A stretch of DNA of 64,000 nucleotides from Piromyces finnis finn (taxonomy: Eukaryota > Fungi > Neocallimastigomycota). This document shows positions 228-5,278 of the stretch, piece by piece (position 1 is the first letter of the stretch; each line of letters starts with the position of its first letter). The notes under the pieces are model-generated. The model was not told the origin of the DNA. It was given only the letters and a program-made list of their open reading frames with translations, and searched no databases. The stretch is from contig MCFH01000001.1 of NCBI GenBank assembly GCA_002104945.1, positions 744,001-808,000 of the forward strand, in the 5' to 3' direction. Both the position numbers and the translations under genes were made by a program.

Positions 228-3200
228 ATGAATGAATTAAAAATAACTAATGAAAATTCTCTTTCAGAAACAATTTCATCATATGTTGAAATTCTTAAAA
301 AAGTACCATATTAAAATTCAATATTTTTAAATATCAAAAAATTTTGTTTTTACTAAATATTTAATAAATTTTATATTGTTGTTGTTGTTGTTGTTGTGAT
401 GTTGTTGTTATAGGTAACACATTTTAAATATATTTCAGACAAAAACTTAATTAAAATTGCATCAAGAGTTTCCGAAGTCAAATTTCAATCTAATCATGAA
501 ATCTTTAGAAAAGTAATTAACAATATTACAATGATATTTGCAATTAATATTACATATTTTCAAAACATTAACATATATGCATATATATAGGGAGATATGT
601 CAAATGACATTTATATCTTAATTGAAGGAAATGTATGCTATTCTTTATATGAATATATTTATAATTATAATTTTAAAAAAAAAAACATAAAATACTTACA
701 TATTACAATATATTTAATTACTTAATTATTATAACATATTAAAAAAGGCCTATCGTGATTATTTAAATGGAAGATCTGGAACATATATTCATAAATTTTC
801 GTATTTTGGAGAAAGAAGTGTATATATCATGATACTAAAAAAAAAAAATTAATCATAATATTTTCATGAATGAATATTTATAAAAATATTTATATTTTAA
901 TTGTATATTATTAATAATTCAATAATAAGTGCTTATTTGATGAACCAAGAAGATGCACTGTATCAACTACTTGTACTAGTCGTTGTCTTCAATTAAAAGG
1001 TGAAGATTTCATATATATGATTCTTCATGAACTCCCCTTTGCTACAGCAGTTGGTAACTATCATATAGAATTATTTTAATGTTATATAAACGTTAATTTG
1101 AAAATTAATTAAATAATATATAATAAAAAGGACGTTCTTTAAGAGTTAAGCAACATATCTTCGGTAAATTTATATTATTTATATAATCATTTAATTAAAT
1201 TACATTCAATAATTTCAATATTTTCCTATTCATATATTAATATATATTGATCAATATTTGTTTGAAAAATAGATAACTTTGAAGCTTTCAATAATTATTT
1301 ATTTAGTTGTGTTGCTAAGAAAAAAATTAATTTCCAAAAATTATTAAATCTCTACGCTAACATGAAACCTGCTATGCATCCAAACGTTAAAACAGCAAAA
1401 CTTGAAACAAGTGCTTGGGTTTATGCTATTAAGCGTTTACCAACAAATATTTGTTCAACTAGTACTATTGTTATGTCTACTAAAATCATTCCAGTAAGTT
1501 ATTAATATATATTTAGAAAAAGTAGTATTTTAATAATTAAAAATAAATATATATATCATATCCTCCAAAAAAAAAAAAAAAAAGATCCTAATGGATGAAA
1601 TGAAGAGAAATAACACCGGTAATGTTAAGACAATATGTAGAAGAAGATCTACCTGGAACTTAGGTAATGGTAAAATATTTATCCTTTTAAGAGACTCGGA
1701 AACCGATATTATTGATCTTATGACATGTCTTTGTTTACATGCCATTGAAGCTAAAAAATTAAGAAATTTATTATCTAAAAATCCAAGAAATATAAGTTTA
1801 TTGGTATATTATTTATAATATATAAATATATATAAATATATATATATAATGTATATTAAATTAATCATTTTATATAATTTTTATTCTTAGTATGATGCTA
1901 TTCAAGAAATAAAAAATGGGGCTAATGAAACTTTTGAAATGCAAGAAAAAATTTTATCCAAAATAAAAGAATTAACACCAGATGATGTTGAAGGTATTTT
2001 TATATTACAATAGCAAATATATATAATATAATAAAACTCCAAAAAACTAATATTTCTATGTTAAAAAAAATTATTTATATATATAAAACAAGGTTTAAGA
2101 AAGTAAGAATATTTTGATATATGATTTATTATTTTTTATATTGTATTTTGATTAAAAGATATATATATATTAAATAATAATTATTATTATAATAAATAAT
2201 ATTTAAAATTATAGCCTTTGGGGTGATAAGACTTTAGAAAATATATGGAATGTATTATATCAACATGGTGATTATAATATTATTATTGACAAACCACAAG
2301 ATAGTTTTGATGATGTTAATGAAATTTGGATTGACAAAGTTAGAAATGCTACAATTAAATTATTGGGTGTAAGTTTTTTTTTTAATTAAATGTGATATTT
2401 TTTTAATTACTTTAATGAAATAAAATATTACTTAATATTTTTTAATAATTTATTAAAAAAATAAAATATTAAAATATATATAGAATTATAATACAGATGA
2501 TTTAATTGTAGATATTATTTCAAGTAATACACATTCAGTTGTAAATCTTGTTTCACCATGGTTACATAAAAAGAAGCAAGAAATATTAGAATGGGGAAAG
2601 AAAATTCATCCAGAAATTGTTGAAGTAATTTTTAAAAATTTCTGAATTTTTTATTTTTGAATATTTTAGTGAATTTATCATTCTATGTTATTATTTATGA
2701 TAGCAAAATCCAGTTGATGATGAAGATCTTTTATACATCTTGCTTCAATTCTATTTAAAGTAACAACTTTATCAAATATATATAATTATTTTTAGTTTAC
2801 AATACTCAATAAAATATGTTTTAAATATTATATAATGATAATAATAACAGGGAGTTCCCAGATCAAGCAAAAGAAAGATCAAGAGAAGAATTTAACTACG
2901 GTATTCTCTCTATTTTTGAAGAAGTATGTTAACAATTAATTAAATAATAATTAAATTATATATATAAATACAGATTTTAACAATAATATTAATTTTTTAT
3001 TAATATTATTAGGATTTAACTGGTATTTCTGTTCAATTAATTGATCCAACAAAATTAAATAAGAAATATTGTGATAATTTATTAAAACTCAAATTAAACA
3101 GATTAAGACAACATAAAAGACATTTAATTGTTAATGTTGATTTTGCCTTCGGTCATCAAGCCGAAGAAATTGTTCATTGTTTAACTTTATTATTTAGAAA

Positions 3201-4297
3201 ATCTATTCGTAGTTTGAATGGTAAAAAAAAAAGTTACAATATAATTTATAAACAATTAAAATCATTTTTATTAATCGCCATTATATCTATATTTTTTTTT
3301 ATTATATATAAAAGTTGTTGGTAAAGCCGGTGGTTTGATTGGTAAGAGAGGTGATATTCTTTTACCATCTCATGTTCTTTTACAATCCCAAGATGATCTT
3401 CGTCCAATTGCACAAACTGGTATTTCACCAGAAAAAATTGCAAAGATTTGTAGTAGAGAAGTTCATGTTGGTACTGTCTTAACAATAGAAGGTACTCTTC
3501 TCCAAGACAGAGTATTATTAAATTTCTATAGGTAGGCTTTTATTAAACTTTATTCAAAATTATATTTTTAAATTTCAACTAATTTTTTTTTTTTTTTTTT
3601 TTTTTCAATTCACATAAATTTATAAATTTTAGAAAATTCTCACATTGTATAGGTCTTGAAATGGAAGGTAAAAAAAAAAAAAATAACATAATACATATAT
3701 TGCTTGATTAAACTTAAAAAAAAATTTTTTTTTTCTAATAATATTATAATTTAAAATAAAATTAATTTTAATCAGGCTCATACTTTGTAAGACAAATTGA
3801 ACAATCTATTATGAGAGGTCTTTTAGATAATGATGTAAGTACTAGATTCCTTTACTATGTAAGTGATATTCCATTAGATCTTAAATCTACTTTGTCTAAA
3901 TCTCTTAGCCCATGGGAAGGTAAATCTCATACTAATTAATAAATAAATTTTTACTTCAAATACTAAGTTAATCTATTATACACTATTATAAAATGAAGCT
4001 ATTCCACCACTTTATTCTATTATAAGATTAATCATTAATCAATTATTTGATGATGATAATATTTACTCTGATACAAGTCTTAATACACCAATTACACCTA
4101 TTGATGCTACCATGGGAGAATTTAGTAGTTGCAGAAGAAATAATAGTATTAGTCTTATGCAATCGAAAACTTTCAAAAGGAATATTGAACGTTCCTTATC
4201 AAAAGATATTGTTAGTGAAAGTCTAATAGAAATACCACGAATTATTAAAGAAGATGAAGAAGAAGAAGATACGCCAAAATTTTTAGATGATAATTAA
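228..4297 (+). CDS. cNMP-binding (CAP_ED) domain fused to a DUF6909-like PNP/AMP-nucleosidase-fold domain, about 19 exons
   Basis: Manual GT-AG splicing gives a continuous frame. N-terminus: HEIFRKGDMSNDIYILIEGN...FGERSCLFDEPRRCTV (cNMP phosphate-binding cassette). Then AWVYAIKRLP, RRRSTW...DSETDIIDL, DIISSNTHSVVNLVSP, NVDFAFGHQA, VVGKAGGLIGKRGDILLP, TIEGTLLQ, IGLEMEG, YYVSDIPL. ORF-track pieces 1591-1818, 3335-3535 and 4112-4297 are exons of this gene. Confidence 0.85.
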
Positions 4298-4663: not shown

Positions 4664-5278
4664 TTATACAAGTGGTATATTTTCTTCTTTTTCTTGATTG
4701 ACTTCTGCTTTGTATAATTTAAACTTGTAGTTTATAAAACGTACAATCAATATTAGAAAAGAACTTGACGTTGTGCCTAGTAAATTTGCCTGTAATTTAA
4801 TAATAAAAAATAAATAAAATAATATTATATACATAATATTGTAAATATATATATTATAATTATAATATATTTATGATTTAATACACATACAATAATATCA
4901 CCAACATCAAACAATCTATACTGAAAATTTTAAAATTATTATAAACATTTAAAATTAATTCCGGTTTTAAATTTGACATATATATATATAGTAATAAAAA
5001 TAATAATTTACTGGAAATATAGATTGTACGGCCTCACTAATAACAGACCATGCTATCATTATAATAAAGCATCCTGTCCAATAAAGAAAAGTTCGAGTAA
5101 ATATAAAAATGTAATTTATAAGAATAGTAGTTAAAAAAAATACTGAAAAATGTAAAATTTTATCTTCTCCATCCAAAAATGATGGTAATTTTATCCACTC
5201 ATGAGGTGCAAATCCAAGAAATGCAAAATATAACAATAATAGCACTGATATAACTACTACTGGATATCTAATTTTCAT
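4664..5278 (-). CDS. VanZ-like family small membrane protein (3 exons: 5278-5012, 4920-4891, 4789-4664)
   Basis: Spliced product contains DKILHFSVFF...SVISEAVQSIFPYRLFDVGDIIANLLG, matching the VanZ-like pattern DK..HF...E..Q...P.R.FD..D..AN..G, plus hydrophobic helices. All junctions are GT-AG. Confidence 0.85.

Follow-up and report, generated by a model that had tools for sequence, protein, structure and literature searches.

Does a single gene of the anaerobic gut fungus Piromyces finnis couple a sensor for cyclic nucleotides to an enzyme that cleaves nucleosides or nucleotides? The question was raised by the plus-strand locus at positions 228-4297 of a 64,000-nucleotide stretch of the P. 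finnis genome (referred to below as the window), for which an initial annotation had proposed that both functions reside in one protein. The present analysis demonstrated that the gene encodes one polypeptide, in which a cyclic-nucleotide-binding (CNB) domain is followed by a full-length DUF6909 region (Pfam PF21850), and the second half of DUF6909 is predicted to adopt the PNP/UDP fold of the NP-I enzymes. We infer that the product is probably a cyclic-nucleotide-regulated enzyme cleaving the N-ribosyl bonds of purine nucleosides or nucleotides, either as a hydrolase or as a phosphorylase.

The region is about 20% G+C, and numerous short open reading frame (ORF) pieces are spread over all three frames of the plus strand. 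With canonical GT..AG junctions, these pieces could be assembled into a continuous splice model that opens with the ATG at 228, closes with the stop codon at 4295-4297 and comprises 19 exons encoding 774 amino acids (aa), separated by 18 introns of 77-115 nt (Table 1). Residues 1-675 of this model are identical to the public P. finnis protein BCR36DRAFT_578930 (P0108; ORX60858.1, UniRef A0A1Y1VN54). A HMMER search of a protein library with exon 8 as the query detected a 771-aa protein with 92% identity over this exon, along with about 100 further, more distant cluster representatives. This orthologue (P0002) is 81% identical to the model from end to end, and five orthologues of 768-784 aa showed 81-87% identity along the entire length.

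Splicing was supported by L018, a 2665-nt JGI contig that contains the uninterrupted ORF of another close orthologue (P0107, 87% identical to the model). As the contig is collinear with all 19 exons of the window, including the micro-exon and exon 19, and carries none of the introns, it was regarded as the product of a spliced RNA. The sensor and the enzyme-like part are accordingly encoded by one mRNA in this close relative. The single spliced frame assumed in the initial annotation was thus borne out by the 19-exon model, by the orthologues and by the contig, which matches every junction, and the two domains are not separate genes. The 10-nt micro-exon 2093-2102, flanked by introns of about 100 nt each, was supported by the presence of GLRNLWG in P0002, and the cDNA-to-genome blocks showed a gap of 9-10 nt exactly at this position. 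The public gene model (ORX60858.1, 681 aa) leaves the donor of intron 18 unused: it continues through 3920-3937, ends with ...SPWEGKSHTN and lacks exon 19 (3999-4297). Since this exon is backed by the five orthologues and L018, the public model is corrected by our analysis. The ratio of nonsynonymous to synonymous substitution rates (dN/dS) between the window coding sequence and L018 was 0.116 overall, and was 0.043, 0.061, 0.121 and 0.34 for the CNB domain, the DUF6909 N-terminal domain, the PNP-fold domain and the tail, respectively, demonstrating purifying selection that is strong on the CNB domain.

The identity of the N-terminal module as a CNB domain was established through its relatives. 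Pfam cNMP_binding (PF00027), with a gathering score of 27.5 bits, matched P0002 at 50.6 bits (E 1.9e-13) and is present in the precomputed annotation of P0108, and the fragment encoded by exon 5 of the window alone scored 14.5 bits. When a profile of 50 family members was searched against the PDB, PKG and PKA regulatory chains were retrieved with E-values of 1e-25 to 1e-48, exclusively through the N-terminal 120 residues. As originally read, the phosphate-binding cassette FGERSCLFDEPRRCTV is intact, with Gly, Glu and Arg spaced canonically over 16 residues; of the aligned sequences, 50/50 keep the Gly, 43/50 the Glu and 44/50 the Arg. The residue following the cassette Arg, which had been taken as a hint of a ligand other than cAMP or cGMP, varies over the family (R, L, V, E, A) and says little about the ligand.

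These results bear on the alternative that the CNB domain is not a sensor of 3',5'-cyclic nucleotides. The domain might instead recognise some other small molecule, such as a nucleoside or nucleotide and perhaps the substrate or product of the protein itself, or serve only a structural or oligomerisation role, the enzyme part of our interpretation being unchanged. CRP/FNR-type CNB folds take many other ligands. The CNB domains of trypanosomatid PKA bind purine nucleosides instead of cAMP (bioRxiv 10.1101/2023.10.24.563761). Furthermore, the position after the cassette Arg is non-canonical as well as variable, and the family's kinetoplastid clade has lost both the Glu and the Arg of the cassette. 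In contrast, the three cassette residues and their spacing are retained by most members of the fungal and bacterial clade, the window protein included, the best profile matches are the cyclic-nucleotide sites of PKG and PKA, and the domain is the region of very strong constraint described above. We consider a ligand other than a cyclic nucleotide unlikely, and cyclic-nucleotide sensing by the window protein is kept as the preferred interpretation.

The remainder of the protein, except for the tail, corresponds to DUF6909, a label that the initial annotation had given and that the Pfam searches confirmed. Single-exon translations matched the 535-position profile collinearly at positions 2-50, 65-120, 211-249, 311-375, 378-449 and 486-512; five of these six pieces exceeded the gathering score of 27 bits (34.6-44.7 bits, E 1e-8 to 1e-11), and the sixth was weak (E 0.12). 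Such collinear matches are far beyond chance. P0002 matched positions 2-534 of the 535 at 340.5 bits (E 1e-101), and PF21850 is also present in the precomputed annotation of P0108. NCBIfam and PADLOC scans of the exon pieces gave nothing useful.

The structure of the DUF6909 part of P0107 was predicted with AlphaFold2 from 50 sequences, and the resulting template-free model (m66686dd6ab30) showed a mean predicted local distance difference test (pLDDT) value of 88.9 and a predicted template modelling (pTM) score of 0.86. A full-length model, also template-free, reached a pLDDT of 83.8 and a pTM of 0.82; here high-confidence helices connect the CNB domain and DUF6909, and the tail past residue 700 is disordered (pLDDT <50). 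In a Foldseek search against the PDB, the best 500 matches were all NP-I enzymes (E ~1e-8, probability 1.0), with AMP nucleosidase first (E 7e-9), followed by uridine phosphorylase, MTAN and PNP. VIA-align superposed residues 208-540 of the model on the NP-I enzymes PNP, MTAN and AMP nucleosidase with Z scores of 19-20 and a root-mean-square deviation of 2.5-2.9 A over ~215/234 residues. An independent search of 48,161 representative chains agreed with this assignment, as the 20 best were all NP-I enzymes (Z 12-19) and the next, unrelated fold followed at Z 8.6. The models thus assign the NP-I fold to the C-terminal half of DUF6909; following its first strand, this domain carries a helical insert of ~60 aa (aa ~402-466). 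The PNP/AMP-nucleosidase fold that had been proposed for the whole enzyme-like part was supported by both Foldseek and VIA-align for residues ~365-697, and the similarity covers this half of DUF6909 only. At the level of Pfam, three of the ten first homologues matched PNP_UDP_1 (PF01048) at 19.1-22.1 bits (E 1e-4 to 1e-3), below the gathering threshold of 25.1 bits. No match to PF01048 was obtained for the other seven of the ten, including P0002, nor for the exon pieces of the window, and the precomputed annotation lists PF01048 for a few bacterial members.

The conserved motifs were then placed on the modelled fold by hhalign pairing of the family profile with E. coli Mtn, Amn and DeoD, taken from the annotated K-12 genome; these pairings served for motif placement only and not as proof of homology. 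The motifs quoted in the initial annotation (FGERSCLFDEPRRCTV, GKAGGLIGKRGD, IGLEMEG and YYVSDIPL) were all present, and the parallels it had drawn to AMP nucleosidase and PNP_UDP_1 were upheld by this placement, with residues of the catalytic type conserved. GKAGGL..RGD aligned with GSAGGL..VGD of MTAN and GHCGGL..IGD of Amn; in the 50-sequence alignment, no variation occurs at G546, K547, G553, R555 and G556, and the more distant DUF6909 members that stand alone keep G546, K547 and the GD, with K, I or V in the R555 column. GLEME aligned with GVEME of DeoD and AIDME of Amn, and YYVSDIPL with LCVSDKPL of Amn, placing D658 opposite Amn D428. E625, M626, E627, S657, D658 and P660 are invariant in ~80 aligned members. 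They occur throughout the 50-sequence alignment, in stand-alone members at 20-25% identity, and in the kinetoplastid, Colponema and Andalucia members. In the IISSNTHSV loop, S397 and S398 are invariant and N, T, H, S and V are conserved at at least 90%, and the loop is retained in distant stand-alone members and in kinetoplastids. This Ser/Thr/His-rich loop and the invariant Lys occupy the place where a phosphate or 5'-phosphate would lie. In NP-I enzymes, the ribose hydroxyls are bound by the second Glu of the Glu-Met-Glu motif, and the Asp of the Ser-Asp pair protonates N7 of the purine (MTAN D197, DeoD D204).

The N-terminal domain of DUF6909, corresponding to the first 207 residues of the model, was predicted to be a separate alpha/beta domain of ~200 aa with conserved positions rich in Arg, His and Lys, among which Y176, H184, Y199, R203, R241, R243, R258, D263, D266, E277, K280 and R282 are invariant. 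No PDB sequence match and no hhalign match was found for this domain (hhalign probability of 0.1 against E. coli Amn), and both fold searches were filled by matches of the PNP domain and did not reach residues 158-365. The PNP-fold domain could be a pseudo-enzyme that acts as a ligand-binding module or scaffold, or could perform another chemistry, with the real activity carried by the Arg/His-rich domain, which equals the PNP domain in its number of invariant polar residues; moreover, a fold alone is no proof of function. Invariance of the NP-I catalytic residues (EME and SD) from bacteria to trypanosomatids at 20-25% identity would, however, be hard to explain for a scaffold, and the placement of stand-alone members in operons of the xanthine dehydrogenase type, described below, fits the release of a base. 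We regard a pseudo-enzyme as improbable, and the preferred role of the PNP-fold domain is that of the catalytic module.

Table 1. Coordinates of the P. finnis gene, its exons, domains and motifs in the window, and of stand-alone DUF6909 genes in bacterial loci
Feature	Position	Strand	Residues and remarks
Whole gene	228..4297	+	19 exons, 774 aa: cNMP_binding, DUF6909 (N-domain and PNP-fold domain), disordered tail
Exons 1-6	228-302, 414-512, 591-632, 748-819, 930-1053, 1131-1163	+	splice model
Exons 7-12	1273-1493, 1585-1803, 1891-1993, 2093-2102, 2215-2368, 2484-2624	+	splice model
Exons 13-19	2704-2759, 2851-2923, 3013-3220, 3315-3531, 3633-3667, 3776-3919, 3999-4297	+	splice model
Micro-exon (exon 10), 10 nt	2093-2102	+	encodes part of ...E-GLRN-LWG...; required by the frame
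Exon 19	3999..4297	+	last PNP-fold helix (AIPPLYSIIRLIINQ...) and disordered acidic tail
CNB domain and hinge helices	414..1162	+	aa 26-148; exons 2-6, introns inside the span
Phosphate-binding cassette FGERSCLFDEPRRCTV	805..962	+	aa 92-107; split by intron 4 (820-929)
DUF6909 N-terminal domain	1299..2311	+	aa 158-365; Pfam profile 2-120 on exons 7-8
Predicted PNP/UDP (NP-I) fold domain	2312..4063	+	aa 366-697; last ~330 residues within DUF6909
IISSNTHSV loop after strand 1	2514..2540	+	aa 395-403; at the position of the phosphate/ribose loop of PNP and MTAN
VNVDFAFGHQAEE, strand and loop	3130..3168	+	aa 514-526; N515, D517, F520, Q523, A524 invariant
GKAGGLIGKRGD	3320..3355	+	aa 546-557; GKAGGL..RGD motif
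IGLEME(G), putative Glu-Met-Glu ribose-contact motif	3649..3667	+	aa 622-628; Gly codon split by intron 17
YYVSDIPL, Ser-Asp at the NP-I catalytic acid position	3853..3876	+	aa 654-661
Stand-alone DUF6909 genes	L013:6001-7719, L015:6001-7722		between FAD/FeS gene (upstream) and Mo-subunit gene (downstream)
Stand-alone DUF6909 genes	L010:7001-8707, L011:7001-8731		directly after FAD/FeS genes; Mo-subunit genes upstream in L010

The combination of sensor and DUF6909, initially regarded as not described in fungi, turned out to be the standard architecture of a large family found in bacteria and in flagellated eukaryotes including trypanosomatids. cNMP_binding and DUF6909 occurred together in all ten of the first homologues, in 45/51 DUF6909 matches of a first word-indexed search and in most of those of a second. 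The fungal members were from Neocallimastix, Piromyces and Anaeromyces (one each) and from Gonapodya, and the bacterial ones included many metagenome-assembled genomes named Spirochaeta, Alkalispirochaeta and Myxococcales. Other eukaryotic members were detected in the diplonemid Sulcionema, the alveolate Colponema and the jakobid Andalucia, and kinetoplastid members in Trypanosoma cruzi (Tc00.1047053504449.30), Leishmania major (Q4QF65), Angomonas, Leptomonas, Phytomonas and several other Trypanosoma. None from salivarian trypanosomes (the T. brucei group) was among the 61 matches listed, which is not proof of absence. The database names of these proteins are 'cyclic nucleotide-binding (domain-containing) protein' or 'DUF6909 family protein' only. 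A 1157-aa protein from a bacterial metagenome (P0103) carries NADAR, cNMP_binding, DUF6909 and a C-terminal DFP (CoaB-like) domain, a four-domain fusion that points to ADP-ribose or N-glycosidic chemistry.

A quick maximum-likelihood tree, which was midpoint-rooted, was flagged for compositional bias and left out the kinetoplastid proteins, grouped the anaerobic fungi and Gonapodya in a clade beside a group with Sulcionema. The long proteins of Colponema and its relatives formed a second clade, and the bacterial proteins of 650-730 aa were separate. A recent transfer from bacteria to the fungus was rejected, because of the 18 introns and because of the position of the fungal clade, which lies beside other eukaryotes and outside the bacterial clade. 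Among the matches listed, the closest relatives of the kinetoplastid proteins were Colponema and its kin. In this kinetoplastid/Colponema group (P0273 of T. cruzi, P0252 of L. major, P0033 of Colponema and their relatives), the cassette Glu and Arg are lost and the NP-I motifs are intact. The loss of the cassette residues parallels the nucleoside-binding PKA of trypanosomatids, and the parallel is noted here as a likeness only.

The bacterial gene neighbourhoods were examined for both types of members. Around the fused genes, six distinct neighbourhoods were variable, with housekeeping or signalling neighbours such as EamA and Mla transporter, pheST, ParA-like, chemotaxis, two-component, FHA, PP2C and kinase genes. 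In one 3.97-Mb genome (L012), the fused gene follows a gene of the adenosine kinase family (PF04008) and overlaps a response-regulator gene, and a class III cyclase gene (Guanylate_cyc) is located 4.5 kb away with signalling genes in between. The stand-alone DUF6909 genes of Chloroflexota adjoin subunit genes of the xanthine dehydrogenase type in 4/4 distinct loci examined (Table 1), where the neighbouring products contain FAD_binding_5/CO_deh_flav_C/Fer2_2 (FAD/FeS) or Ald_Xan_dh_C/MoCoBD (Mo) domains. In these loci DUF6909 abuts the upstream gene or lies within a few bases of it, often with overlapping start and stop codons. As the lineages are related, the four loci count as one conserved association, and this placement fits an enzyme releasing a purine, or a different N-heterocyclic base, that would then be oxidised. 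The DUF6909 gene of another stand-alone subgroup (L019:1991-5439) begins on the final base of a Na/Pi-cotransporter-PhoU gene.

Two side observations were made on neighbouring genes. In the Chloroflexota locus L011, a gene of the metallo-beta-lactamase fold (L011:2614-3405) with a match to Pfam Anti-Pycsar_Apyc1, a family of cyclic-nucleotide phosphodiesterases, lies 3.6 kb upstream of the stand-alone DUF6909 gene; the match may be a generic one of the metallo-beta-lactamase fold. In the window itself, the minus-strand ORF 4967-5278, located just downstream of the gene, resembles the first exon of a hydrophobic protein. No Pfam match was obtained for this ORF, of which 4970-5278 was tested for a VanZ-like domain since VanZ-like genes occur near DUF6909 in two bacterial loci.

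The neighbourhoods also bear on a role in immunity, suggested in the initial annotation by analogy with Pycsar, Cap17, Detocs and NLR proteins. As an immune or abortive-infection effector, the protein would deplete ATP or another essential nucleotide in response to an infection-triggered cyclic nucleotide. The combination of a sensor and a PNP fold does resemble Cap17 of CBASS and DtcC of Detocs (bioRxiv 10.1101/2023.01.24.525353), and the CNB part gave weak PADLOC matches to PycTIR-type effectors (E 1e-3 to 1e-6). However, PADLOC searches of eight members detected no Cap17 or Detocs match and confined the PycTIR matches to the CNB region, and no CD-NTase gene, Detocs gene, adjacent Pycsar cyclase or defence island was found in the six distinct neighbourhoods of fused genes. 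A single orthologue per anaerobic-fungus genome seen, the clean fungal clade and the overall dN/dS of 0.116 also argue against such a role, and the survey of PNP immune proteins by Rousset et al. does not mention fusions to CNB domains (bioRxiv 10.1101/2023.01.24.525353). The analogy describes reasonably well a way in which the protein might act, while PADLOC, the six neighbourhoods, the one-to-one orthologues and the dN/dS left membership of these systems unsupported; we regard an immune function as very improbable.

Returning to control of an NP-I enzyme by a cyclic nucleotide, the following mechanism is regarded as the most likely. The protein would be a soluble enzyme of three modules, namely a CNB domain of the PKA/PKG type, the DUF6909 N-terminal domain and the PNP/UDP-fold catalytic domain, with continuous hinge helices connecting the first to the second. 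Once bound to the CNB domain, cAMP or cGMP would shift these helices and thereby switch the catalytic domain on or off; as with the activity, we infer both the ligand and the existence of such a switch, whose direction may be either. As in NP-I enzymes, the Glu-Met-Glu motif would hold the ribose and the Ser-Asp pair would protonate the purine, and cleavage of the N-glycosidic bond of a purine nucleoside or nucleotide would release the free base together with ribose or ribose phosphate. A cyclic-nucleotide signal could thereby be coupled to the purine or adenylate pools.

Several observations weigh against this interpretation. No chain was found when the DUF6909 profile was searched against PDB sequences, and single-exon searches gave noise only, so that the link to NP-I enzymes is seen by fold and motifs only. 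The hhalign comparison of the family profile with E. coli Mtn, Amn and DeoD was weak (E 0.05-0.1), and the literature search found no paper on DUF6909, PF21850 or the member accessions. The N-terminal domain of DUF6909 could carry the real activity or a second one. The phosphate-binding Arg residues of hexameric PNP are not conserved and their positions are hydrophobic here, a feature that resembles the hydrolases MTAN and Amn; the coupling to the Na/Pi-cotransporter-PhoU gene in L019 is a single hint of phosphate involvement, and the enzyme may be either a hydrolase or a phosphorylase. With regard to regulation, no conserved partner cyclase of the bacterial fused genes was present in the six distinct neighbourhoods, and cyclic-nucleotide control is not family-wide because the cassette Glu and Arg are lost in the kinetoplastid/Colponema clade. 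With these points taken into account, a cyclic-nucleotide-regulated purine N-ribosidase or phosphorylase is still the function that we regard as probable for the window protein.

A broader and more tentative proposal concerns the family as a whole. The DUF6909 proteins may represent an ancient, unrecognised class of cAMP/cGMP-gated enzymes, N-ribosidases or phosphorylases of purine nucleosides or nucleotides, that spirochaete-like bacteria have in common with flagellated eukaryotes and that would convert a second-messenger signal directly into a change of the purine or adenylate pools; the trypanosomatid sensor, having lost its cyclic-phosphate contacts, may answer nucleosides, paralleling PKA. 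This is a possibility to which we give less than even weight. The literature search found no paper combining a nucleosidase with CNB domains, nor did the searched literature contain the fold, the active-site interpretation or the operon context given here for DUF6909. The protein can thus be described as an NP-I enzyme candidate with a new regulatory architecture and as a possible new class of cyclic-nucleotide effector. To our knowledge, the accepted list of direct eukaryotic cyclic-nucleotide effectors is short, comprising PKA/PKG, Epac, CNG/HCN channels, Popdc and a few others. If correct, our interpretation would add a class of effector enzymes working on nucleotide pools, not on phosphorylation or ion flux.

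The large conserved family extends to the human pathogens T. cruzi and Leishmania, in which the effectors through which cAMP acts have long been sought. Among trypanosomatid CNB proteins, reviews of cAMP signalling list CARP1 as the validated one and name other in-silico candidates without function. The DUF6909 proteins would, if the proposal is true, be a missing link in the cAMP and purine signalling of trypanosomatids. In the anaerobic gut fungi, the results point to cyclic-nucleotide control of purine metabolism. DUF6909 itself moves from a Pfam domain of unknown function to a specific hypothesis with named active-site residues and with candidate substrates and ligands, and the bacterial operons of the xanthine dehydrogenase type suggest a pathway for it.

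Comparison with known systems places the window protein as a full-length member of Pfam DUF6909 (PF21850), a family without an assigned function. Like the Pycsar effectors, which combine a CNB domain with a TIR or transmembrane part, it has an N-terminal CNB domain before a C-terminal effector, and shows weak profile similarity to them in the CNB domain only. It differs from them in its predicted PNP-fold effector, in that no adjacent pyrimidine cyclase was found and in its single-copy eukaryotic orthologues. Cap17 of CBASS, DtcC of Detocs and the PNP domains of fungal NLR proteins are likewise PNP-fold effectors tied to a signalling input, and N-glycosidic cleavage of adenine nucleotides has been shown for these proteins (bioRxiv 10.1101/2023.01.24.525353). 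For the DUF6909 family, however, PADLOC gave no sequence-model match to them, the six bacterial neighbourhoods of fused genes showed no defence context and the sensor is a different one, and the PF01048-based survey in the same study did not include the DUF6909 family (bioRxiv 10.1101/2023.01.24.525353). With MTA/SAH nucleosidase (MTAN), hexameric PNP and uridine phosphorylase the window protein shares the predicted NP-I fold and the GSAGGL..GD, VEME and SD positions. Unlike these enzymes, it misses the gathering score of PF01048 and does not conserve the phosphate-binding Arg positions of PNP, and its NP-I domain sits within the ~535-aa DUF6909 with an extra N-terminal domain and a CNB sensor.

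The comparison with AMP nucleosidase (E. coli Amn; PDB 1t8s, 2guw and 7uwq) brings both differences in architecture and the closest likeness in motifs. No Pfam AMNp_N was present in any member scanned and VIA-align covered Amn residues 178-468 only, and as the Amn N-terminal domain is thus absent, the window protein does not belong to the Amn family. It further differs from Amn in its CNB regulator, in the ~60-aa helical insert after strand 1, and in the SSNTHS loop and the invariant Lys of GKAGG, which are without counterpart in Amn. Both proteins, nevertheless, appear to be two-part regulated enzymes with a C-terminal NP-I catalytic domain, and Amn is under allosteric control by a nucleotide (ATP). 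Amn was the top Foldseek match and gave VIA-align Z scores of 18-19, and it provided the best motif match (GxxGGL..GD, xxME and VSDxPL) with 30% identity over 115 columns. Judged by its sequence motifs, Amn is the closest characterised enzyme to the P. finnis protein.

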